From Lepidodermella squamata (taxonomy: Eukaryota; Animalia; Gastrotricha), in contig JBLDXI010000031.1 in the NCBI GenBank assembly GCA_047495785.1, positions 1,736,001 to 1,800,000 on the forward strand: 64,000 bases of DNA. The letters run 5' to 3'. This document shows positions 9,101 through 24,523 of this stretch, piece after piece. Every line of letters begins with the position of its first letter. Within the stretch, counting starts at the first letter, position 1. A program made the position numbers and the translations under genes. The notes under the pieces are model-generated. The model made no database searches. It worked only from the letters and a program-made list of their open reading frames with translations, and was not told the origin of the DNA.

Positions 9101-11180
9101 TATGTGTGTAACGCGTCTCTCGAACATGTGCGAGCTATAACTAACTGAGTAAAATCAAGATTACAACAACAGACGGATTGCTAATCAGGAAAAACCCGAG
9201 AATTTTCGTTTGGGTAGTACGACAAAGATCTACGAGGCAGATTGACAGGTTTTTGCACTTTGCGGCCGATGTGAATAGGCCGCGTTGCTTGGTGATTCAA
9301 TCATCGGGGCGCTCAGCTTCAATAAAGTGCGCGCCACAGTCCAGTGCCGAAAATCAATGCAGACAGAAAAAGCTAATGAGCTGTGCCGTGAAGACCACCG
9401 CCAGCTGTTATATAGCGCATTGCGAAGCCAAAATTAGAGAAAAGACCAGTCACGTAGTATCAAAGTGGTATTTCCATTTTTAGCGGATTGAGACGCTGGA
9501 TTGATATCACCGGAGCTAAAACAAAGTGCTGCTTCAAAATCACTATCCCTCAAGAGGTATCCAACGCCGGCCTTAATAAATCCAGGTTTGCGTCTTTAAA
9601 GCTCCGAACAGAACCATTGCTCATCACGCAACTACAGTTCAACGAATACGCAGCAAGAAATAACAGAATGAAATGACGGCACCCATCAATTCTTAACAGC
9701 ACCATATATACTTGCATTCATCTCACTGTAACAAGTCTCCTTGAACTTCATCTTCTTGCAACATGCATTTAAATGCTAAGAAGAAATAAGAAATAAAGCC
9801 GAAATTAATTGAAAGCAATCTTATGCATCGGCAATCAACACTACTTGGGCGAAATATATCTTAGGAATATTCAACATGAGTTGACATTCGCATCGCTACA
9901 AGCGATATAGGCATGTTATTGATGCAATGTGCATCATGGGCCTCTGACCTCTTTGTAAAAAAATGCAGCTATGCAAAAACATATTGCTGTAGGCTATCTT
10001 TTCCTATACCATTGCATCTCACTACTTTACCCATAAGATTGAAGAAAAAAACCATGCAATGTCGCTAAGAGTTACTCAGTATCGCTTATTGCTTAATATT
10101 TGGATTACATACTCAATAGACAGCGACATTAGATAGCATAGCAGCCTGCTGAGAGAGAGTGCCTCGGCCTAAACTAGTGCAACATGCAACCGGAAAAAGA
10201 GTAAGTAATGATCAAATATGCTAAGTATTATTATTCTCAGCTCACAGATTTGGCTAGGAAAATGCTATGAAAGACAGTTTAAAGCCCACTTGCTTCATTC
10301 AATAACTTCGACGTTACTCGGTTTCTTCCATGTTCTATGCATCGAATTCCTTTTCAGCGATAAGTATGCAAGCTGTATGCCAGAGTACCATCAACACTTT
10401 GCAACTTGCAAGTTTGCAACTTTGAAAATTTGAAAATTTACCGCTCAAACCATCCTGAAGGTCATATACATATTTTCCCATGAAAACAAAGAAATTAATT
10501 AACGATTGCGAAATTCATTTATATAAGAAATGATTGGAAAAATAAATAGCTAAAAATATCGTCGCTCTGGCCGTCCGCAGTTAGCCCGGATTTCAACGAG
10601 ATCCAGCTTGTGCAGGGTAGGGTCGAGTGCTTTTGGCGCTTCTTCCCGCAGTTAGCCGCATTCTCCGCGAATTCGCACTCCTCATCTCGATGAATGTGTC
10701 GTTCGTCACACCAGCGACAGAGATTCCCGTAACGCTGGCGCCCCGACTTTTGTTGATGCTGCGCTTGATGCTGCATGGTACAAACATTCGTATCTTGTAG
10801 CTTTACTTTTGCGTTGTAAGAGTGTTCCTTACACATCCAATGTTCGAATAACATCGATTGAATACGTTGTCGCGGTACAGCTTGTACCCGATGCTTACCA
10901 TAATAGCAATGTTAATAGCGACTAACGCCGAATTACTGGCCGCTGAGATGTCGAACGCGGTGCAGAAGACAGCCTCGCACTTCAGCCGCTCAAGCGCGAA
11001 TGCGGACGCTGTGTGGATGAACGCCGATGATCCCGGTATAGAACCAAATTGTTCCAGTCAGCATGGTGAGAAGAGCGCGAGCCACTTTTGTGGGCACTTT
11101 TCGCAGTTTGGAGAATAGTTTAGCGACACAATTCTGAAGGCAAATTAGTTTTAAGCGCAAACCGCCGAGCCTCTCTTCGC

Positions 11181-11439: not shown

Positions 11440-14400
11440 ATGAGCGGTAATGCCGCCACTCAGCAGCAGCAAGAGCTGCAAGACCAAATCAGATCGCTGG
11501 AATACGCCACCCTGAAAGCGCCCTACGAAATTCTGAATAAGAAGTACCGCCAAGCGCACAAAGTCGTCGAAAAGGAAGCCACACTGACCGGCGGCCCTCG
11601 CTCACTCGAGCAGCTCCTCGGCACGCCGGGGGTTACATCGGCCGCCGTTTCCGACGCTCTGGCCAACCTTGAACGGGCACTGGTCGAAAGTCGAAAGCGA
11701 GTGCTATCGGCGTATGACGAAGAAATTGAAGCTACGCTAGCGCTGAAAACGCGAAACGACCATTTGAAACTGGCTGTTGAGACAACAGACGTAGCGACGC
11801 TGGAAAACTGGAAAAATGAACGGGCTATTCGATTCATCGCCGAATACCTCATGCGCACAGGCTATTACAAGTGAGATTTGCTGATTCGAAAACTGAAGTT
11901 TGATAATTTCGAAAGAATTTCAAATCGAGATTTGATTGACGTATAAAATTAAGGTTCCAGCACTAGATTTAAGCATTCGAGGCACGATTTTTTCCATTGT
12001 CAGCTACCATTTTTTTCGATTTTAAAACGAATTTTTCTAATTTTAGCACCGCGATAAAAATGATTCGTCACTACAACGTGGAGCATTTGGTCAATCTCGA
12101 CATTTTCCTGTCGATTCGCGACGTTGAAGACTCCTTGCGGTCGCACTCGACCAGCAAAGCCCTGGCATGGTGCATCGAAAATCGGAGTCGGTTGAAGAAA
12201 CACAAATCGACGCTCGAGTTCAACCTGCGCATGCAAGATTACATCGAGCTGATCAAACTCGGCAAGAAAAAGGACGCCCTCGAGTGAGTTTTTTCAGATT
12301 TTCTTTAGTTATCGTCAAATGGTTGCGACTATTTTTGTAATTTTTCCCTGAAAACCAACCAATTTAATAGGGTATACCTGAAAATTTGGCTCGAAGTAAC
12401 AGGAAATTATGTACCTACGAATAGTTGAAATAGGTATACCATATACTAGTTGAGTACAAATTGGCACGCCGTTTTTTTATTAATTTAGCTAGGTAATTTA
12501 CCTTGAGATACCTTCCCTATTGAAAGGTTTCTCCTTAGATCTTTGTTTACAAAGCTATCAATTACAGCAGATTTTTTCATTCGAATATTAGTAGTAGATA
12601 AGTAGAGATTGAAGCTTCCAGTTCCAATTTCGTGATTCCAAGCCGGAATAGCATTTTGATGAAAGATTACTTGGTAACATCACCCTCATCGACCAGTAAG
12701 TATTTGAGTCGAAAATGTGTTTTATCCGATGAATCAACGTTTATAAGAAACTCGATGATTCGTGTAGGAAATAGTGTTGTCCAAGGAAAAGTTACTGAGC
12801 TCACCGACCTTCTGCTCCACGCAGGTTTGACAGCGCGGAACTAAGAAAAGTAACTTTCTTTGCATACAAGAACCGGTGAGCGACTAGCTTCAAAATCACT
12901 GCTCAATTTTTCTCCGGGCTTAATGCTGGGTCGAGATATTTTACGCAGATTCAAGGGACAAGCAGATAGAGACGAAGTCAGTTTAGTTCAGTGCATTTAA
13001 AGTCACAATTACGGCCAATAGTAACAAGCAAGCAATGTTTTATTTCATCAACAAATAAACTAGCACCGGCCACGGGTGGGCTTTGGGCGCGTCCCGGAAT
13101 GTTTTCGAAGCAACACAATGCTGTTCCGCCAATGCTGTTCAATAGTAACAATAGTAACAAAAATATACCAAAACCACTTGGGAACGGAAACAAAAAATCA
13201 GTCAGAAAGGATAAACACGAAAAGCTGACTGCCTCTCTTGGCTGCTACTGTGTATGTGCATGCTAATTGGTTTTGTGGATTCAAAACAACAAATTGTAAC
13301 TGGCACACATTTATTTGATACTCTCCACCCTGCTGCTGTAAAGATATTATAAAAAGCGCCACACCAGGCTCATCTTCAATGATGTTAGTATTGACCCGAC
13401 AACTACCGTCGACAGCCAAAGCCCGATCAACCGCAGCGTTCCCCGCCATGAGCAACTGCAACAACAGCAGCATTCTCTTGCGTTCGGCATTACGACTGAA
13501 GCCTCTGTAATTTCGCAGTCGGCCAATGGAGCGGAAATGAGCTCGTCTAGTGCAATGTTCAACATAAATACATACTAATAATGGGTGACTTTGAGTGAGG
13601 ATCGACCTTCGAGAACGTCGAGGGAAAATTTGGCTCCGCCTTGTAATCGATGAAATCCCCATGTTTCAACTTGATGACCTCCAGTGGAATAGGTTCCGGA
13701 CTTGCAGATGAAACAATATCTCTCCAGATATCAGGATGAACAATCGGTGACAGCCATCGCTCTGATTCAGAGTATAATTGGACAGAAAAACTCTCGCCAC
13801 TACATGGTTCCGCCACAGTATTTTTTTGCCTGAAGTTCTGGACAGGCCAAACCCATCTCGCGTTGAAGAAAGTCACATTTCTCGAGTGTGCGGTTCCTGG
13901 ATTCAGTGATCTGCAGCAGCTCGGTATCCCAGATCATTCGGGTATTAGGATCAAGATATGTCACCAACCGGTGAAGGTCGTCTACCGAGAACTTTGTCGA
14001 AAATGAGCTCAGACCAGCTTGAGATTATCCGGGATGAAACAACTAGCAGAAGCGATAGATGAGGATGATTGCTCTTTGCCGCGAAAACTGTACCTACAGT
14101 TATTAATTCGAATATGACGGACCCCGCAAATGATGGAATAGTTGATTAACGATTCACGATTGAAGGTTATGAGTTTCCGCGGCATCATTGCTCAGTGCAT
14201 GAACCACAACGAAATGTTATGTCCGTGTAGACGAAATGACCAGGTCGCAAAAGCCGGTTTGGAAAGAGTAGTATAAAAATCTCACAAAGGAGTCCTAAAC
14301 ACGAACCTGAACTTCATATAATTTAGTCAGTTTGAGTGGCTAAATTTATCAATGGAGATGAATTAGTGTTGATGATTTCTAATTGTGAACATTCGATTTC

Positions 14401-15109
14401 CCTATTTTTAGTTTTGCTCGTAAGCACTTTCGAAGCATCGAACCCGAGCAGCTGCCCGAGTTGCAGAAGCTGATGATGATGCTGGGCTTCCGCGACCTGT
14501 CGAAACTGCCGAAACAATACCGCGTGCTGCTGTGCGAGTCGCGCTGGTGCGACTTGATCGAGTCGTTCCGCCGCGACAGCTTCAAACTCTTCCAAATCCA
14601 GTCGGCATCCCTATTCGCACTCGTGCTACAAGCCGGTCTTTCAGCGCTCAAAACTCAGTAAGTTCCGGACTTGGTTTCACGTTTATTTCGCGCAAGCCTG
14701 TTTTGTCTGAACTTTCCCTCTAAAAGAACTAGGGTTCCTCTAAAAATCTAAATAGCGTTTCCCCACGTTTTTCTGATTGTTTCGTTATTTAATGTTTGTG
14801 TGCCTTGTTAGCTCGTGTTTTTCGATGCAACTGATGGACCGGTCGCCGCTGTGCCCGGTGTGCCACCGCGCGCTGAACCGCATTGCGGCGCAGCTGCCGT
14901 CGAGCCACCACTCGCACTCGAAGATCCGCTGCCGGCTGACGGGCCACATCATGGACGACACAAACCCGCCGCTGATGCTGCCGAACGGCCAGATCTACTC
15001 GTACAAGGGCCTGTCGGAGATGGCGCGCGTCCGCGGCTTCGACGTCACGTGCCCCGTCACCGGCGAGACGTACCGCCTGCAGCAGTGCGAGAAGGTTTTC
15101 CTCATGTAA
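11440..15109 (+). CDS. MAEA: Macrophage erythroblast attacher (CTLH/GID E3 ligase subunit), ~403 aa
   Basis: Exons 11440-11870, 12047-12283, 14412-14657 and 14812-15109 join in frame. Motifs: LEYATLKAPYEILNKKYR, LisH (FIAEYLMRTGYY), CTLH (ALAWCIENRSRLKK), LQAGLSALKT, and degenerate RING (CPVC...PPLMLPNGQIY...CPVTG...KVFLM). Confidence 0.95.
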
Positions 15110-17038: not shown

Positions 17039-18174
17039 ATTTGCCCAAACAATATTCAATAATGAAAGGAATTCTGGAAATTCGAAGCTTTTCATAGGCA
17101 TTTCAATGGGCTTATATTATAAGAAACGAGACAAGTAAGCTGTCCCTATGTTCACGTTGATCAACGTCAATAGTGATCTGCTTTTTTCTCCGAGTCATTT
17201 CCACCTAATGCGTTTAATTTGTGATCTGCGAGCCGCGATATTAACGTTATTGAGAAACAATTGGATAGGCTTGAACTAATCCGTAAACATGCCGGTTCGA
17301 AAGTTCATGGCCGATATTCGAGCAGTGTAATTTGCTCAAAAGCAATACACTGTGATCGTCCTAAAAGCTCATTTCACGACGAAGTGCTGTATGAGCTCTT
17401 GTAATTTGTAATTAGAATAAAAAACATCCCTTTTTGTTCAAACAGGTTTATCCTCTTCGGATTCTATTATTGCAAGTTTTGATAGAAGAAAAGCTCTTTC
17501 TTCGGCTTCTAACTAACGAAGGGAAATTTTATTTGTGAAGCCCTATTACATCTTTGTATTGAACCGCAATAAGTCACGGGCCTATTAAGTAGCAAAGAAA
17601 TATTCCAGCCGCAAACGGTATGCTTTCGTTCCCGAAATCAGGAGGGCTAAAATCCTCGTTTTGTAAAGTCTCATTCAACAAAAAGCAAAAGCCTCGCCTT
17701 TTATGTTCTATTTTACAACGACACCAAAAATAAGCTCCTAGGATCCAAATGTGTAACTTGACGCCAACGCTTGCGTCGACGCGTCTGAAAAGAATCACGA
17801 GAGGAGAGTTTTGGTAGGCATTGTACTGTTTGCTTCTCAACTTAATTCCTTTTTTAGTACGAAGTAAGCGCAATTTTGAGGCTAGTAGTATTGTGAGGCC
17901 TAACAAAATGTAGCGTGCGTTGTTACCAGACATGTGAAAATGCTTGCTCCTGTTTTTATGACTCGACCTGGTATAGGTTTGCATAGGCCGTAAACCAATT
18001 TTTTTCGTATAGGATATTCCCATAACCCATAAATAATGTTCAATCAGGATTCATGCACTGTTTAATTATTTCATGTAGAAATGTGTTCCTCAATACTTTC
18101 TTATTATTGATGTATTAGCTTGGCTGTTCTTGTTTTATGGCGCAATCTGCCAAATATCGGGAAACTACCAAAAG

Positions 18175-19762
18175 ATGTCATCAATGTCAAGGGCGTATCA
18201 AGGGAGATTCGCTTTTGTGATAATTGCCTCAGCATGCCTCACGGTGCTCTATTTCAAGCTGCGAAAAGGCGAACATCTCACGACTTTTCAATCAAATGAG
18301 GGCTTATCTAGGCTATCGAACAGTCGCTGGTTCACTGTTGCCGCAAGAGGCGATCGGCATTTTGAGTTCACCCTATGCGGCGCGTATTATGACCGGGAAA
18401 CGTGCAGCAATGTTGGAGAAAGCTCAGCGAATGTCACAACTTCGATATTATTCGATTTCACGCCAACAGTCAACAACCACGTGCGTAACATGTTTGCCGA
18501 TCACGTTCGAGCTTCAGAAAAGTGGCTATCAGGCGAAGGTCCCTTCCCAATTAATGGCCCATGCTTGCCACTGAATGATGACAGCATTCAATGCGTGATT
18601 CGTGTTTGGAACCGCATCAACAGAGCCAACAAGTTGAATCGATACCAGGACAGTTTTATGTATGCGGTGAGGCTCGATAAGAACCTGCAGATTGTTCCGC
18701 ATTCTGGCCATCTGCTTGGCATCCCGAGTACTATTCAACAACCAGTTGGTACCGGGCCAGAGGATGCAAGAATGTTCGAACTCAACGGCACGATATTCAT
18801 CGCTTTCACAAATGCTCACTACTACGGAACTTCTTTTCTAAGGTTTGTGAACATCTTCCCTAGCTTACGTGGAACACTCTCTTAGAGGTTGACGTCTCAG
18901 TATCTTGCATTAAATGATTCATAACTGAACTACTCGTAATAATTCTCTTCTCCAGCAAAGGGCTTCCAAAAGCTTGAACCTTAATGAATCTTTAGACGCC
19001 AGTTTTTGTGGTCTTTGGACGATAGCGTGCTGTACTCCATCAAAGTTAGCGACAAGCTGAGACTGGAATCAGCCGCCAAAAACTGGGCACCCTGGGTCTA
19101 CAACGGCCGGTTGCGCATGGTCTACGAACTCTTGCCCAAATTACGCGTAATGGAGTGTTATTTCAAACCGGTCCAAGATCAGGAAGCTCGGATTGCAAAT
19201 TGCTCGTTTGTCATTGGTAGCGAAGGGGGTAACTCAACCGCCTTGGTTCTTCGTGGCGGCACTTCCTTCGTTCATTACTTCGGTGATTACTACCTTTCAG
19301 TGACTCATACTCATACGCGCCGGCTAGGCCCAGCCGGTAAGTTTCATCCAAGCCATTTTCAACCTTATTTCGCAAGTTTATCACTCAGAATATGCTGCTC
19401 AATTGACGCTGCTCGATGCGAAGCTCAACAGAATCGCTCTACTCACATCGCCAATATTCATAGATCCCGATACCATGATGAACGTGCCAGACGCTGAGAT
19501 GTTTGTTGAGAAGCCGATTCTTTTCAGCACGGGCCTGTTCATGGAATCACTTGACAGTTTGATCTTCACAGCTGGACTCAACGACAACCACTGCATCATC
19601 GTTAGGCTTGCTGGGTTCGAGAGTCTACTAAGTAACTTCTTGAAATTACGTCTGAATTGCGTTTCTATCGCATATGATCTTCAGAGAAGGCCATTGAATC
19701 TAATGAAGCTTGTGGAGCCACAACTTCAAGCCGAATGCCTAGTGCCATGGAGGAATGGCTGA
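18175..19762 (+). CDS. Type II membrane protein, GT91/beta-mannosyltransferase (DUF3589)-like beta-propeller, ~460 aa
   Basis: Exons 18175-18842, 18996-19336 and 19389-19762 are in frame. N-terminal TM FAFVIIASACLTVLYF; motifs GPEDARMF, KNWAPW and LRGGT in the order typical of Bmt-like proteins. Confidence 0.6.
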
Positions 19763-20117: not shown

Positions 20118-23100
20118 TTAGACGTTGAGCTCGCACACGACGCAGCGGGAAACGAGGCGAGAATTGCGCTCGCTGAACCACGAATCGCCGCTCGGCGTAG
20201 AAGAAGAGGCTGCCGATGATGAACCGGATGCAGCATCAGTCTCCGCACTCGCCAACCAGTGCCTAACGAAAATGGAAAATAGAAAAAAATAAAAATCCTC
20301 CTTGAATTATATCAGCTTAGATAATTAGAGACTAGCTAATTAGCTAAATAATAAGCAAATTAAACATCATAATTCGAAGATTTTTGAAACAGTATTTATA
20401 AAATTAATTAATTATTTTATTCTATTTATTAATTAATTAAAATTGATCAATCGAAAAAACGTAACTAATTAGCGATAATTAATAAGCAATTAATTAATTT
20501 TCTTGGAGCTAATTTTTGGTGCTCAGCAAAATTAGAAAAAACTCACGTTGTGATGAGAGGAACGCGAGATGATTGCGATCGCGTTGCGGCGAATGGGAAC
20601 CGGCACAAATTGGCGATAGCCGACGGCAATTTCGCGGTGTGAGGCGTCGACGCGTTGAGGCCCGGCGGGCAGTCGAGCGCGGCGATGGGCTCGAACGAGC
20701 GCAGGCACGACTCGGGCGAGGCGAGGTCGCGCTTGACGATGCGGCTGCCACCGAGGCTGGCGCCGACGAACGAGTAGCCGTGCCACAGCTTCGTGAAGCC
20801 GGGCCGGCACGCCAGCTGGTTCGCCTCGACGCCGTGCTGTACGTAGAGCGGCGCCCGCGACAGACACACCGAGCAGCGCGAAATGTGCGCTCGTTGGAAC
20901 ACGTTCGCATCGCTCATGTTGTGCAGTTTGCCTGAATTGGAAAATAATTTCAAAGGAATCAAAATAGTTGGAAAGATATTTCCGAAACATAAAAGCTCCA
21001 ATTTCACTCAATTTTCACCCGAAAAGCATTCAATTGCGCACCTTAATTTTAGGGTTCCGGCAATAAATTTGAGACTCCAGAATTCCAAAAAAAAAGGATT
21101 TTTCCATTTCAAGTCGGCGCGGATCTTATTACTAAGCCTGTATAGATTCTACTAATTTCACTCCAAATATTCAACCTCAAACCCACAACTGTCTTTTCCA
21201 GATTTCATTTAGCTAGCTGGAACCCTAACATTTACTGGAACCCGTTCTGAATATCCGAATTTAAGATAAAAATTGAACGCTATAATTTGCCTCTAAAAAT
21301 GATAATATATTTCTCCATAAATCAAATGGCTACCTAAATTGAACTCAAGCGTGGCTGGGCTGGTTGAAACTCGTCTCGAGCCAGCTCCTCGGCCTCGACT
21401 CGCCAAAGTCGGCATCGGGTACGTCGCCTTTCCATTGGTATCAAAAGTAACCAGAACAGCCGCCTCCACAGCCTGGGACACGTAATCAGCAGCCAACAGC
21501 CAGGTGGAGTGCTCGACGACAGGCTGGCAGAATCGGCGAGGCGAATTCGCGACTCGCGAGTCGACGCACGACGCGGCCGATAAGATAGGCGCGAATGTTG
21601 GCGAACAGGTGGGTGCGTCACCTGAGGCCGTCGCCAACAGGCTGTAACCGGAAAGCAGCGGGGTGTGACCGGCTTTGCACCCAGGCGAAACTTGAGAGCC
21701 AACCTAGCAATTAAAAATTATTAATTAAATTAAAAAATCCATTTTAAATTAAAATCATGCGTTGAAAAGAGACATTTAATTAAAAATTAAATTGTAATTT
21801 TTTGAAATTCATGATTTGACCCGATTTTCAATATTCGATTCTTTCAACTACAACAAAATGATTCTTTAATTTTTTTACCTGGGAATGTTGTACGAACGAC
21901 TGGCCGGTGGCGCGGAGGACAAATTGCGCATCAGGTAACGGTTCCAGCGCGCAAACCGCGCACGCCTCAGCACCCAGTTGCGCCTCGGCGGGTGACTCAT
22001 CACCCGGCGCACAGTCATGGCCCGGCGGGCAATCGACCCGGGTAAGGACGGAAGCTCGTGGCAGGCAAGAGGCTGTTGCGGATTGGTCGGGTACCAACTG
22101 ACCTGGAACCAGGGCGTTCACAGCGCGACCGTCCCACAATTTAACATATCTAAAAAATATATGAACCAAATTACGTTTATACTCAAGTAAATGAAAAGAA
22201 AAATGAATTCAAATAAAAAAATTCAAAATGTTGAGAATTTTCAATTTTCCATATCGATTAAAATATTTTGTAATTTTTTTATTATTTTTTTGCGGTTAAA
22301 ATTTAATTATCAATTTTGTTAATTTCCGCATTGTATTTTTTCATTGATTGATCGAATTTTATTTTAATTTTATTACCTCATTTGTCGCTTCTCAGGCGCT
22401 GGGCAGTCCGCTCGACCGTGAAATACTTCGATAGGCCCCACCGATCGGCAAACTACGCAGCGTGACGGTGCGCTTGAACCAGTCAGCCATAACGCTCGCT
22501 GAGCAATCGATTTGTCTTGGTGCGCCCGCATCTGCGTAAAACTCGACGGCGCCTCTATCGCATTGGCGAAGGACACCAGGGTGCGCTTGGGCGGCTCCGC
22601 AAAGGGCACGCATGACCCGGCGCCCGAGGGTTCGTGCAGCAGCTCCGCGTTGGCATGGGCGTCGTCCAAGGTCACCCCGAGGTACGACCAGCCTCGCCAT
22701 AGCTCGACGTGGGACGGCTGGGCGCAGGAAGGCGCTGTGTTGTCGCGACGGAGCCGTTTAGTCGCGGCTCCCATGTCGTGCAGGACGTAGATCTGCGGCG
22801 TTGTGACGACGGTTTCTTGCTCCTCGGGTGTCGGACAGCGCTCGCATTGCCCGTTAGGGCCACGTGACCCATTGGCGCCCTTTGGACCGGGTTCGGTACC
22901 AGGAGGGCCCTGGTCACCCGCGTCACCCTTTTGCCCACGAGGGCCGGCACGCGAAGGAGCAGCCACCAGTTGAAACTCGCAATTAACGGAGTAATTTTGA
23001 CTAAATTTATTCAAAATTAAATTTAAAATTTCAATTAAGAAGCTAATTTTATTTTCTTCTAATTTTTCAAAATTGAATAAAAAATTGAAAAAAAAATCAA

Positions 23101-24523
23101 ATATTAAATCTCAATAAGAAATTAAATTGATCAAAACTTACGGTTGGCAAGGAACTGTAACATTCGCCGGGCACTGAATTTTGTCGCAGGAGCACATCCC
23201 AGCTGCTCCGGGGTCACCCTTAGCACCCTGGATCATGGGTGGCCGGGAGCCCGGGCGACCTCGAGCACCTTTAATGTAGTCGATCTCGTCAGCAGTGTTA
23301 GGCTGGCATTGGCCGGATTGCCCGTCGTCACCCCGAGGGCCCGTGAAGCCGCGCGGGCCAGGGCGACCTGGCGGGCCCATCTCGCCCTTGAACCCTTTCG
23401 GGCCGGGCACGAGACAGCTCGGTGTCTTCTTCGCATCTAAACAAGTTCCAAGATCACCCCTTTCTCCTTTCTCACCCTTAGGCACGTTTTCACCTTTGCC
23501 GTCTGAAAAAATTAAAATTTACATTAAGTTCAAGTGGTTAAAGCTTATCTACTCACGTCTTTGGTTTAGGGTGACATTGATGGTGATTTTTGAACCAGCT
23601 CGACCTGGTAGCCCGATTTGGCCCTTCTCACCACTGCCGCCAATACTGCCGGCGATACCTTTGATACCCTTCTCACCTGGTAAGAAAACAGGTTTACAGC
23701 ATTGATTTATTTACAAAAATGCCACTGACCTTCTTCGCCTTGAGGTCCAGGAATGCCAGCTTCTTGGCCGGGGGCTCCGATGGGGCCCAGGACACCCTTA
23801 GGTCCGATTGGTCCCTGCTCGCCGCGATCACCAATCTCACCCTGGGGCCCTGTCTCACCTTTCGGGCCAGTTTCACCCTGATCACCTTTCTGACCTTTAC
23901 AGCCTTGGCGCCCAGCGTCACCCGGATCACCCTGGGCGCCGCGGTCACCCTTTTCGCCAGGAGCTCCACGATCATCAGCGCCACGGTCTCCACGCGGGCC
24001 AGTCGCGCCCTTCTCACCCTTATCACCTCGTTGACCCTTCAAGCAAAAAAATAGGTCAAAGGTCATAATTAGAGGTCAATTAACTCACCTGTTCACCCGG
24101 AGGTCCTTGGGCGCCATCAACACCCCGCACACCTTTTTCGCCCTTTTCACCGGGTAGACCATCGTAGCCGGGTACTCCTTTAGGTCCAACGGGTCCTTTC
24201 ACACCCTGGGCGCCCTTCTCGAGGGTGGGCCGTTCAGCGTCGCACGTCTCCCAGCACTTGGCGACAAACCCACACGTGCTTTTCGCATAATCAGCCTCGT
24301 CGATGTAATCGTATTCGACCGTTTCATTGCCAGCGCCACTGCCGGCGATGCTGTCCTGCTGGCGGACCCGGCGCACCCGAATAGGCGCCCGGAGAAACGC
24401 GAAATCCGCACCACTCGCCGCACCAAACAGCGACGAGCCATGCGACGTGAAGCAGTCAAGCGAATCGATTGCGACAATAATAAGTATTGCTAAATAAGTG
24501 AAATAGGACATGTTGCTCCTCAT
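20118..24523 (-). CDS. Short-chain collagen IV-related (spongin-like) protein with four C4/NC1 subdomains, ~1005 aa
   Basis: Nine frame-consistent exons: 24089-24523, 23730-24036, 23557-23676, 23142-23502, 22377-23000, 21879-22149, 21334-21703, 20547-20931 and 20118-20262. Signal peptide, ~90 interrupted Gly-X-Y triplets, then C4 motifs (LWRGWSYL..GSC..RCVVC; KLWDG..SCL..CAVC; LLSGYSLL..ISRCSVC; KLWHGYSF..SCLRSF..VSRCVVC). Confidence 0.85.

Follow-up and report, generated by a model that had tools for sequence, protein, structure and literature searches.

In collagen IV, each chain carries one NC1 domain, each protomer carries three, and each junction between protomers contains six. Whether a collagen chain might depart from this count is the question raised by a locus from the gastrotrich Lepidodermella squamata. 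The window analyzed here is a stretch of 64,000 nt (GenBank assembly GCA_047495785.1, contig JBLDXI010000031.1, positions 1,736,001 to 1,800,000 of the forward strand), and coordinates refer to this window unless another contig is named. An earlier note, made from the DNA alone, had described a short collagen IV-like chain at this locus and had proposed that it carries two NC1 equivalents. The follow-up analysis reported here bears out both statements. One frame of 1005 codons encodes a short, interrupted collagenous helix followed by four collinear C4 units. We consider it probable that the locus is one intact protein-coding gene, and that it encodes a secreted protein related to collagen IV, with a short chain and two tandem NC1 units. 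Below, units 1 and 2 are called NC1-A and units 3 and 4 are called NC1-B.

Gene structure

The gene model has the same limits as those given originally, with the ATG start codon at 24523 and the stop codon at 20118-20120 (Table 1). When its nine exons are spliced in silico, the coding sum is 3015 nt, which is divisible by three and yields 1005 amino acids. Exons have a GC content of 52-66%, versus 13-34% for introns. If the intron after exon 5 were retained, the frame would end after 19 further codons, and a single-NC1 isoform would result.

Table 1. Features of the doubled-NC1 collagen gene and the basis for each assignment
Feature	Position	Strand	Content or basis
Whole coding span	20118..24523	-	9 exons, 1005 codons; 8 introns, all GT-AG, phases agree
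Exon 1	24089..24523	-	Start codon, signal-like segment, conserved sequon (NxT), Cys cluster, opening 14 triplets
Hydrophobic signal-like segment	about 24452-24523	-	Within exon 1
RVRRVR, putative furin-like site 3' of the signal segment	24362..24379	-	Sequence motif; cleavage presumed
N-terminal Cys cluster, C-x6-C-W-x2-C, adjoining the helix start	24242..24274	-	Motif and ortholog alignment
Collagenous region	22847..24214	-	Pfam Collagen matches in exons 1-4; four introns inside
Exon 2	23730..24036	-	33 triplets; 54% identity to ortholog without indel
Exon 2b	23557..23676	-	9 triplets and interruption ITINVT with conserved sequon
Exon 3	23142..23502	-	22 triplets; 7 Cys in interruptions
Exon 4	22377..23000	-	Final 11 triplets, all of C4 unit 1, beginning of unit 2
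C4 unit 1 (IYVLHD ... SRCVVC)	22448..22792	-	Pfam C4, own profile and AF2
KRLRR, in unit 1 insertion	22745..22759	-	Motif; segment missing from ortholog
C4 unit 2 (RSVGPIEVFHG ... ACAVC)	21951..22447	-	6 Cys; split by intron 22150-22376
Linker between NC1 units, ending in FVQHSQ (HSQ motif)	21879..21950	-	FVQHSQ identical in ortholog; exon 5/6 junction in phase 0
C4 unit 3 (exon 6 and start of exon 7)	20864..21703	-	6 Cys; intron 20932-21333; loop of ~65 residues before SRCSVC
C4 unit 4 (remainder of exon 7, and exon 8)	20133..20863	-	6 Cys; intron 20263-20546; ends SRCVVC
RGD motifs (four)	24022-24030, 23986-23994, 23453-23461, 23327-23335	-	Motif count

A layout of this kind could arise if two neighboring genes were misread as one. 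Exons 1-5 would then form a single-NC1 short collagen and exons 6-8 a standalone NC1 gene. Standalone NC1 genes occur in ctenophores (PMC5395295), and contig C2 of the same genome carries NC1 units without Gly-X-Y repeats nearby. However, exon 6 begins directly after an in-frame TAG and has neither a start codon nor a signal peptide, and the exon 5/6 junction is in phase, within the FVQHSQ / PGCKAGH motif. Moreover, a syntenic ortholog (L003) is present on metagenome contigs of a related species, where a CTLH-domain gene (65-72% identity) adjoins the gene just as it does here. One uninterrupted frame of 638 codons in this ortholog runs from the helix through units 1 and 2 and the HSQ linker into unit 3, half of which it includes, with the exon 5/6 junction inside it. 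A frame of 218 codons supplies the remainder of the chain, and the open frame totals 947 codons.

Seven of the eight introns in the window gene fall within continuous ortholog frame, and only the intron after exon 1 is shared. The one unshared intron of the ortholog (9953-10007) lies inside exon 6, which is continuous in the window. Once spliced, the ortholog reads ...SAD-Y-VPSTVE at a place where the window reads ...AADYVSQAVE. Exon C of the ortholog is continuous across the site of the unit 4 intron, and unit 4 is 53% identical between the two species. The residues at the junctions are also collinear (CQ-P-QNYSV vs CEPKNYSV, M-R-Y vs MAY, and IT-T-HWLA vs IVTHWLA). The prospect of two separate genes, raised when the locus was first described, is contradicted by the ortholog, in which a single frame includes both inner units and half of unit 3. 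Sequence comparison supports one gene, and we find the two-gene reading scarcely credible. Between this gene and the CTLH gene, Pfam searches of open reading frames returned no match.

Helix and C4 units

Exons 1-4 contain 89 Gly-X-Y triplets and one or two more span junction codons, in agreement with the original count of about 90. The Cys-containing interruptions noted at the outset are likewise present, and the ortholog keeps all seven Cys of exon 3 (7/7). Exon 1 is 38% identical to exon A of the ortholog, where 4/4 Cys are kept. The N-terminal Cys cluster reads CGFVAKCWETC in the window and CSFVEQCWSSC in the ortholog.

Downstream of the helix, the four repeats end in RCVVC, CAVC, RCSVC, and RCVVC, exactly as first reported. 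A C4 profile that we built from 183 subdomains matches units 1-4 in collinear order. Its scores are 23.3 bits for unit 1, 17.1 and 8.7 bits for unit 3, and 53.1 and 13.3 bits for unit 4. Unit 2 is weak in the window (7.0 bits) and scores 17.9 bits in the ortholog. The Pfam C4 model (PF01413), which has a curated cut-off of 27 bits, had been expected to match four times. In an exon-by-exon scan, only exon 7 exceeds the cut-off (46.1 bits, for unit 4). Exon 4 scores 19.8 bits, with unit 1 aligned over positions 10-109 of 110, exon 6 scores 14.9 bits, and Pfam matches neither exon 5 nor exon 8 when each is scored singly. On the longer frames of the ortholog, the same model scores 52.6 bits over three stretches and 59.1 bits over two stretches, both above the cut-off.

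The units contain 4, 6, 6, and 6 Cys in order. In unit 1, the middle Cys pair is missing and the loop that precedes RCVVC is short. FVQHSQ starts NC1-B, and the corresponding sites in units 1, 2, and 4 read HDM, HGR, and HGV. The residues that form sulfilimine bonds, which we take to be Met93 and Lys211 from human alpha-1, were mapped through protein P0015. NC1-A is missing the loops that would hold their equivalents. In NC1-B of the window gene, the unit 3 loop has a Met that is unmatched in the ortholog, and Lys is missing from the unit 4 loop. With neither the Met nor the Lys position conserved, sulfilimine cross-links are unlikely in this chain.

Rapid divergence and the question of decay

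The gene evolves fast, with 35-53% identity to its ortholog compared with 65-72% for the neighboring CTLH gene. All Cys except two are kept, at an identity of 35-63%, as are four N-glycosylation sequons. Identity is 49-53% in NC1-B and 35-36% in NC1-A. Among the three metagenome samples of the relative, polymorphic sites number 6 of 2844 in coding sequence versus 4 of 257 in non-coding sequence (Fisher p = 0.006), which points to constraint on the coding sequence. These three copies are 99.7-99.9% identical, and their 3 synonymous and 3 non-synonymous differences are too few for dN/dS, just as the window-ortholog pair is too diverged for this measure.

Divergence faster than that of the neighboring gene would be expected of a decaying duplicate, or pseudogene. 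NC1-A would then be a dead relic, and the protein would work as an ordinary single-NC1 short collagen. The low ortholog identity of NC1-A, its weak profile scores, and its loss of both the middle Cys pair in unit 1 and the sulfilimine-residue loops would fit this idea. Yet the frame is open from end to end in both species, and the Cys of NC1-A are conserved (7/8 in exon 4 and 4/5 in exon 5). In addition, a paralog retains both NC1 units, and NC1-A is modeled as an NC1 fold that is predicted to trimerize (see below). We therefore judge decay to be improbable.

Predicted fold of the inner NC1 unit

Units 1 and 2 are the weakest pair, and the earlier note had allowed that only two of the four repeats might adopt the C4 fold. 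Sequence comparison with NC1-A of the ortholog retrieves solved NC1 domains (1LI1_A, E = 4e-4). AF2 modeled this two-unit segment with a pLDDT of 78 and a pTM of 0.75, and the best 42 PDB matches to the model are all collagen IV NC1 domains (TM 0.48-0.66, E down to 1.8e-9). Unit 1 of the window gene itself was modeled with a pLDDT of 74, and again every one of the 42 top PDB matches is an NC1 chain. The models lean to the NC1 fold because the input alignments consisted mostly of canonical NC1 sequences. Read with this in mind, units 1 and 2 model as an NC1 fold, which runs counter to the idea that just two repeats fold in this way.

When three copies of the ortholog NC1-A were modeled together, the complex score was 0.63, versus 0.27 for the best control. 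Of 30 proteins solved as same-chain pairs, 21 attain that mark, compared with 0 of 23 solved as single chains. Individual runs share at least 41% of contacts, and the partner pLDDT is at least 52. The predicted interface is cyclic, with the N-half of one copy contacting the C-half of the next. These predictions suggest that NC1-A of the ortholog may homotrimerize, although the score may reflect memory of solved NC1 trimers.

A paralogous chain with the same layout

A second gene type, represented by P0003 in the relative, also encodes a short interrupted helix and four C4 units, and Pfam finds Collagen plus four C4 stretches in its product. This paralog is collinear with the ortholog L003 over 634 residues (30% identity, E = 7e-48). 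As in the window gene, its unit 4 is split by an intron within the variable stretch that precedes the WL motif. The two genes of the relative lie head-to-head in three metagenome samples, with start codons 300 bp apart. In L. squamata, the counterpart of P0003 maps to another contig (C43:310214-313880, together with a final exon), and the two genes do not form a head-to-head pair there.

Unlike the window gene, the paralog keeps the middle Cys pair and longer loops, and its units are nearer to canonical C4 (57-85 bits each). It also evolves more slowly, with 74% identity between the two species in NC1-B and 63% in NC1-A, compared with the 35-53% range of the window gene. In both paralogs, the outer NC1-B is better conserved in sequence than the inner NC1-A.

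The genome as a whole has 59 C4 matches, or about 20 NC1 units. Searches of this genome with exon 7 and the C4 part of exon 4 recovered the gene itself only, and no close paralog. Word-indexed protein searches were bounded by a length window and depended on shared 5-residue words. With units 1-3 of the ortholog as the query, they recovered nothing beyond the called fragment of the ortholog itself. With the four units of the paralog, they found the paralog itself and three proteins covering 46-48% of the query (one NC1 each). An HMMER search with 101 amino acids of exon 7, a short and divergent query, gave 188 hits and is not a survey of all C4 proteins. In a tree of NC1 units, NC1-A of the ortholog pairs with NC1-A of the paralog on a very long branch with a support of 42. 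The placement of NC1-B is uninformative, and the doubling cannot be dated from this tree.

The alpha-2 chain of collagen IV co-assembles with alpha-1. By analogy, the fast-evolving chain could be part of an obligate heterotrimer with its slower doubled-NC1 paralog (the C43 gene in L. squamata). The head-to-head arrangement in the relative favors this arrangement, as do similar helix lengths (83 to about 90 triplets) and a collinear layout that includes the interruptions and all four units. Against it, L. squamata does not retain the gene pairing, common descent alone also gives collinearity, and the homotrimer prediction passed its controls. We view an obligate heterotrimer as possible, but clearly less likely than not. 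The head-to-head pair in the relative suggests that doubled-NC1 chains make up an established system of two chains and not a one-off accident.

Comparison with known collagens

Nematode cuticle collagens have short Gly-X-Y blocks between conserved Cys clusters and an N-terminal RxxR convertase site, and they carry no NC1 or C4 domain. Their likeness to the window gene is by analogy only, and no homology is claimed.

Canonical collagen IV (1LI1, 1M3D, 5NAX, 8TYS) shares with the window gene an interrupted helix, a C-terminal NC1 region of 6-Cys C4 subdomains, and an HSQ motif at the start of an NC1 unit. By prediction, they also have the NC1 fold and the cyclic trimer interface in common, and the head-to-head gene pair is seen in the relative only. 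The differences are substantial. Canonical chains have a helix of several hundred triplets, and the window gene also falls below the more than 100 Gly-X-Y repeats used to define collagen IV (bioRxiv 10.1101/2021.10.08.463732). They have one NC1 with two C4 subdomains and 12 Cys, rather than four C4 units, and their Met93/Lys211 pair has no conserved equivalent here. The N terminus of the window gene has a furin-type site and a 3-Cys cluster in place of a recognizable 7S domain.

Spongin short-chain collagens resemble the window gene in their short helix, their occurrence in invertebrates, and a reduced NC1 with parts of the canonical domain missing (PMC5395295). However, they have a single NC1 and no HSQ motif (PMC5395295). 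The window gene instead has two NC1 units, with FVQHSQ conserved at the second. Ctenophores exhibit a diversity of collagen IV genes that includes NC1 without collagen (Fidler et al. 2017, PMC5395295). As in the lineage described here, their collagen IV-type genes are numerous, stand in tandem and head-to-head arrays, and show NC1 domains in unusual arrangements. That report concerns a different phylum and describes NC1 without collagen, not two NC1 units per chain. Our literature search returned no paper that reports two NC1 units within a single chain.

By carrying two NC1 units, this conserved chain departs from the count rule of collagen IV. It provides a natural experiment on what NC1 trimers need for helix nucleation and for protomer joining. 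The degenerate inner and conserved outer NC1 found in both paralogs point to a division of labor that can be tested. These genes also add to the evidence for wide diversification of short collagen IV-like chains in animals other than vertebrates.

Proposed assembly

From how collagen IV works, an assembly pathway can be proposed for a chain that would consist of a signal peptide, an RxxR convertase-type site, the N-terminal Cys cluster, ~90 triplets, NC1-A, and NC1-B. The NC1 units would fold via intrachain disulfides, bring three chains together, set their register, and nucleate the short triple helix from its C-terminal end. Conserved Cys in the interruptions and at the N terminus would then lock or cross-link protomers by disulfides, and the RxxR site would be cleaved in the secretory pathway. 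NC1-B could make end-to-end contacts with other protomers, with NC1-A serving as a helix-proximal clamp or spacer. The product could be a homotrimer or a mixed assembly with the paralogous doubled-NC1 chain, whose gene is the head-to-head neighbor in the relative.

A trimer of such chains would carry six NC1 units, which is the number in a collagen IV hexamer, and the earlier note proposed a different network geometry on this basis. The count also raises the idea that, within one trimer, a folded-back NC1-B cap covers the NC1-A cap and the two together form an internal pseudo-hexamer. The C terminus could not network in this case, and the protein would be a disulfide-linked short fiber or a chain terminator. 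That the sulfilimine pair is conserved in neither NC1 unit is consistent with this idea. However, the linker from CAVC to FVQHSQ has only about 18 residues, which looks short for fold-back when judged from NC1 structures, and we think such self-capping quite unlikely.

The observations can also be combined more broadly. Gastrotrichs might use an ancestrally head-to-head pair of doubled-NC1 genes, the gene described here and its C43 paralog, whose chains co-assemble with six NC1 units per trimer. Assembly would follow a mode unknown for collagen IV, such as stacked double caps, an NC1-A-to-NC1-B daisy chain, or a splayed NC1-B shared between protomers. The resulting matrix would be free of sulfilimine bonds and locked by disulfides. 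We offer this combined reading as a rather doubtful one.

Short motifs

The helix contains four RGD motifs and not the three counted originally. Composition alone would give 1.5, so the excess is weak, and only one of the four occurs at the same position in the ortholog. RGD motifs were dropped as candidate integrin sites on these grounds. Both furin-like sites in the earlier note, RVRRVR and KRLRR, are present in the sequence, and they differ in conservation. KRLRR is unlikely to be a conserved cleavage site because the ortholog lacks that segment, and it was dropped as well. The counterpart of RVRRVR in the ortholog alignment is HRVPR followed by Q, such that RxxR before Q is kept in both species.

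A short collagen chain with four C4 units

The gene under study lies on the minus strand, where stop-to-stop frames and the raw sequence yield nine exons with a coding length of 3015 nt, or 1005 codons. All eight introns (52–402 nt) begin with GT and end with AG, phase is consistent across every junction, and exons have a G+C content of 52–66% compared with 13–34% for introns.

Features of the collagen gene, its neighbors, and the syntenic locus on metagenome contig L003
Feature	Location	Strand	Remark
Exon 1	24523-24089	minus	
Exon 2	24036-23730	minus	
Exon 2b	23676-23557	minus	third of nine
Exon 3	23502-23142	minus	
Exon 4	23000-22377	minus	
Exon 5	22149-21879	minus	
Exon 6	21703-21334	minus	
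Exon 7	20931-20547	minus	
Exon 8	20262-20121	minus	ninth of nine
Stop codon	20118-20120	minus	
Hydrophobic N-terminal segment	MRSNMSYFTYLAILIIVAI...		read from exons
RVRRVR	residues 49-54		read from exons
Cysteine cluster CGFVAKCWETC	after RVRRVR, before triplets		read from exons
Membrane-anchored protein (apparent)	18130-19762	plus	open frames, tail-to-tail with collagen gene
CTLH-domain gene	11488-15106	plus	synteny anchor
Ortholog start codon (ATG)	L003 7688	plus	
Ortholog exon 1	121 codons		
Ortholog exon 2	within 638-codon open frame		helix, units 1 and 2, FVQHSQ linker, first half of unit 3
Ortholog exon 3 (last)	within 218-codon frame		remainder of unit 3, unit 4
Paralog P0003, start of first exon	L003 7388	minus	

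Within exons 1–4 there are 89 Gly-X-Y triplets, plus one or two that span junction codons, arranged in blocks separated by Cys-containing interruptions. The predicted protein carries four RGD motifs, one more than the earlier note had counted, and its four C4-like units end in SRCVVC, ACAVC, SRCSVC, and SRCVVC.

Searches and folds used individual exons, or the uninterrupted frames that a relative offers, and not the joined protein. In an exon-by-exon scan, exons 1–4 match Pfam Collagen. Pfam C4 matches almost in full length in exon 4 at 19.8 bits and also finds exon 6 at 14.9 bits, but only exon 7, at 46.1 bits, clears the 27-bit cut-off. A custom C4 profile, made with 183 subdomains taken from database relatives, gives collinear matches in exons 4, 5, 6, 7 (twice), and 8. 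These make up four units, the weakest being unit 2, and bear out the original observation of a short collagen-IV-like chain with four C4 units. Units 1 and 2 are hereafter called NC1-A, and units 3 and 4 NC1-B.

One gene, as judged from a syntenic ortholog

When 101 residues of exon 7 served as query in an exhaustive HMMER search, one hit was P0001, a 214-aa protein at 64% identity, which was called on the 26-kb metagenome contig L003. The orthologous gene there has only three exons and a coding length of 2844 nt. Downstream from the collagen gene, the CTLH-domain gene is 65–72% identical between the window and L003, and the two stretches are syntenic. The open frames that lie between these two genes in the window have no Pfam match, and the interval is absent from the corresponding place in the relative.

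Comparison with the relative also bears on the alternative that the four units belong to two separate genes. In the ortholog, a 638-codon open frame runs from the helix into unit 3, and residues at three predicted window junctions are collinear with the relative: CQ-P-QNYSV versus CEPKNYSV, QM-R-YVKLW versus HMAYKPLW, and LIT-T-HWLA versus HIVTHWLA. Furthermore, exon 6 has neither a start codon nor a signal peptide of its own. On these grounds, the two-gene reading is taken as refuted by comparison of the predicted genes. The architecture proposed in the earlier note, in which one chain carries two NC1 equivalents, is supported by the four collinear C4 units and by the single gene that the ortholog indicates. 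The altered network geometry that the note went on to propose is hypothetical.

The window gene (20118-24523) has eight introns, whereas its ortholog (L003 7688-10645) has two, and only the first is common to both. Seven of the eight window introns fall within continuous coding sequence of the relative, whose second intron (9953-10007) falls within the continuous exon 6 of the window (...SAD-Y-VPSTVE versus ...AADYVSQAVE). Short, AT-rich introns have thus turned over on a large scale between these two species, although synteny is retained.

Identity between the window gene and its ortholog is 35–63% per exon. All cysteines except two are conserved, including seven of seven in the exon 3 stretches that interrupt the helix, as are four N-glycosylation sequons (window/ortholog: NET/NAT, NVT/NVS, NYS/NYS, NMS/NFT). 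The KRLRR furin-like site previously pointed out in unit 1 is not conserved. The relative's locus occurs in three metagenome samples with 99.7–99.9% mutual identity. With codons numbered along the three concatenated exons, variable sites are rarer in coding (6/2844) than in non-coding sequence (4/257; p = 0.006, small numbers), which points to purifying selection.

Fold and trimer models

NC1-A was the doubtful pair with respect to the C4 fold. In the ortholog, this region (223 aa, one exon) directly matches the sequence of a solved NC1 (1LI1_A, E = 4e-4), and its AF2 model from an 86-row alignment has pLDDT 78.4 and pTM 0.75. In Foldseek, every one of the best 42 PDB matches to this model is a collagen IV NC1 (best E = 1.8e-9, TM 0.48–0.66), with no non-NC1 match at E < 0.8. 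A model of window unit 1 (pLDDT 74) likewise has NC1 chains as its best 42 matches (best E = 7e-4). The agreement favors a C4 fold for the pair, although both alignments consist mostly of canonical NC1 sequences and bias the models toward the NC1 fold. NC1-B, which is split by an intron in both species, gives stronger sequence matches than NC1-A.

Three copies of the ortholog NC1-A were predicted to form a trimer with a score of 0.63, versus 0.27 for the best control. Of 30 proteins solved as one-chain pairs, 21 attained that mark, and of 23 single-chain structures none did. Contact agreement between runs is at least 41%, partner pLDDT is at least 52, and the predicted contacts run from the N-half of each copy to where the C-half of the next begins, an interface like that of NC1 trimers. 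Such trimers are already among the solved structures, so the prediction may reflect memory of them; it is read as likeness to NC1 trimers and not as binding.

A doubled paralog in head-to-head arrangement

On L003, the opposite-strand neighbor of the ortholog is P0003, which has a Collagen match and four C4 stretches of 57–85 bits each. The two proteins are collinear over 634 residues, interruptions included (30% identity, E = 7e-48). Their start codons are 300 bp apart in a head-to-head arrangement, which is typical of collagen IV gene pairs, and the pair recurs in three metagenome samples. In the window's own genome, the P0003 ortholog (63–74% identity) is located at C43:310214-313880, with its last exon further on, and therefore on a different contig from the window gene.

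In both paralogs, the unit 4 intron falls in one and the same variable stretch, ahead of the WL motif. The NC1 doubling would therefore predate the split of the two paralogs, and a tree of NC1 units agrees with this order, weakly supported. NC1-B is better conserved than NC1-A in both.

Comparison with known collagens

Relative to canonical collagen IV NC1, window unit 1 lacks the middle Cys pair, and the loops bearing the sulfilimine Met and Lys, at the positions of human alpha-1, are missing from units 1 and 2. The NC1-B loops are long, but no Met or Lys is conserved in them between the window gene and its ortholog. NC1-B opens with the one HSQ motif that is kept. By published working definitions, the predicted protein falls outside canonical collagen IV, being too short and having four units, and also outside the spongins, from which HSQ and two NC1 units distinguish it.

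Two units are present in 142 of the 154 nearest C4 proteins and a single unit in eight; four units occur only in the P0003 cluster. Word-indexed searches with the ortholog and paralog NC1 regions found no other protein covering all four units; being limited by query, length window, and shared words, they are not a census. No description of two NC1 units on one chain was found in the literature searched.

Fewer than 10 Gly-X-Y triplets are present in 113 of these 154 proteins (database hits such as P0002, P0005, P0006, P0010, and P0150), and several start with a hydrophobic segment. P0150 is named at its source a prepilin-type N-terminal cleavage/methylation domain protein and combines Pfam N_methyl with C4. 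The few-triplet proteins and this architecture suggest that NC1-like domains may reside on non-collagen, possibly bacterial, proteins. In another database protein, P0015 (977 aa), Collagen and a full NC1 occur together with ankyrin repeats and a protein kinase domain; it is probably a fused gene prediction.

The window's own genome holds 59 C4 matches in all, or about 20 NC1 units. At C2:1044655-1047012 (L008 3653-6016), two complete NC1 units share a strand, separated by 0.9 kb, and the 7.5 kb examined contains no Gly-X-Y run. They represent either two standalone NC1 genes in tandem or one double NC1 that is free of collagen. A same-strand tandem array of three short collagen-plus-NC1 genes is located at C42:4105925-4112353 (L009).
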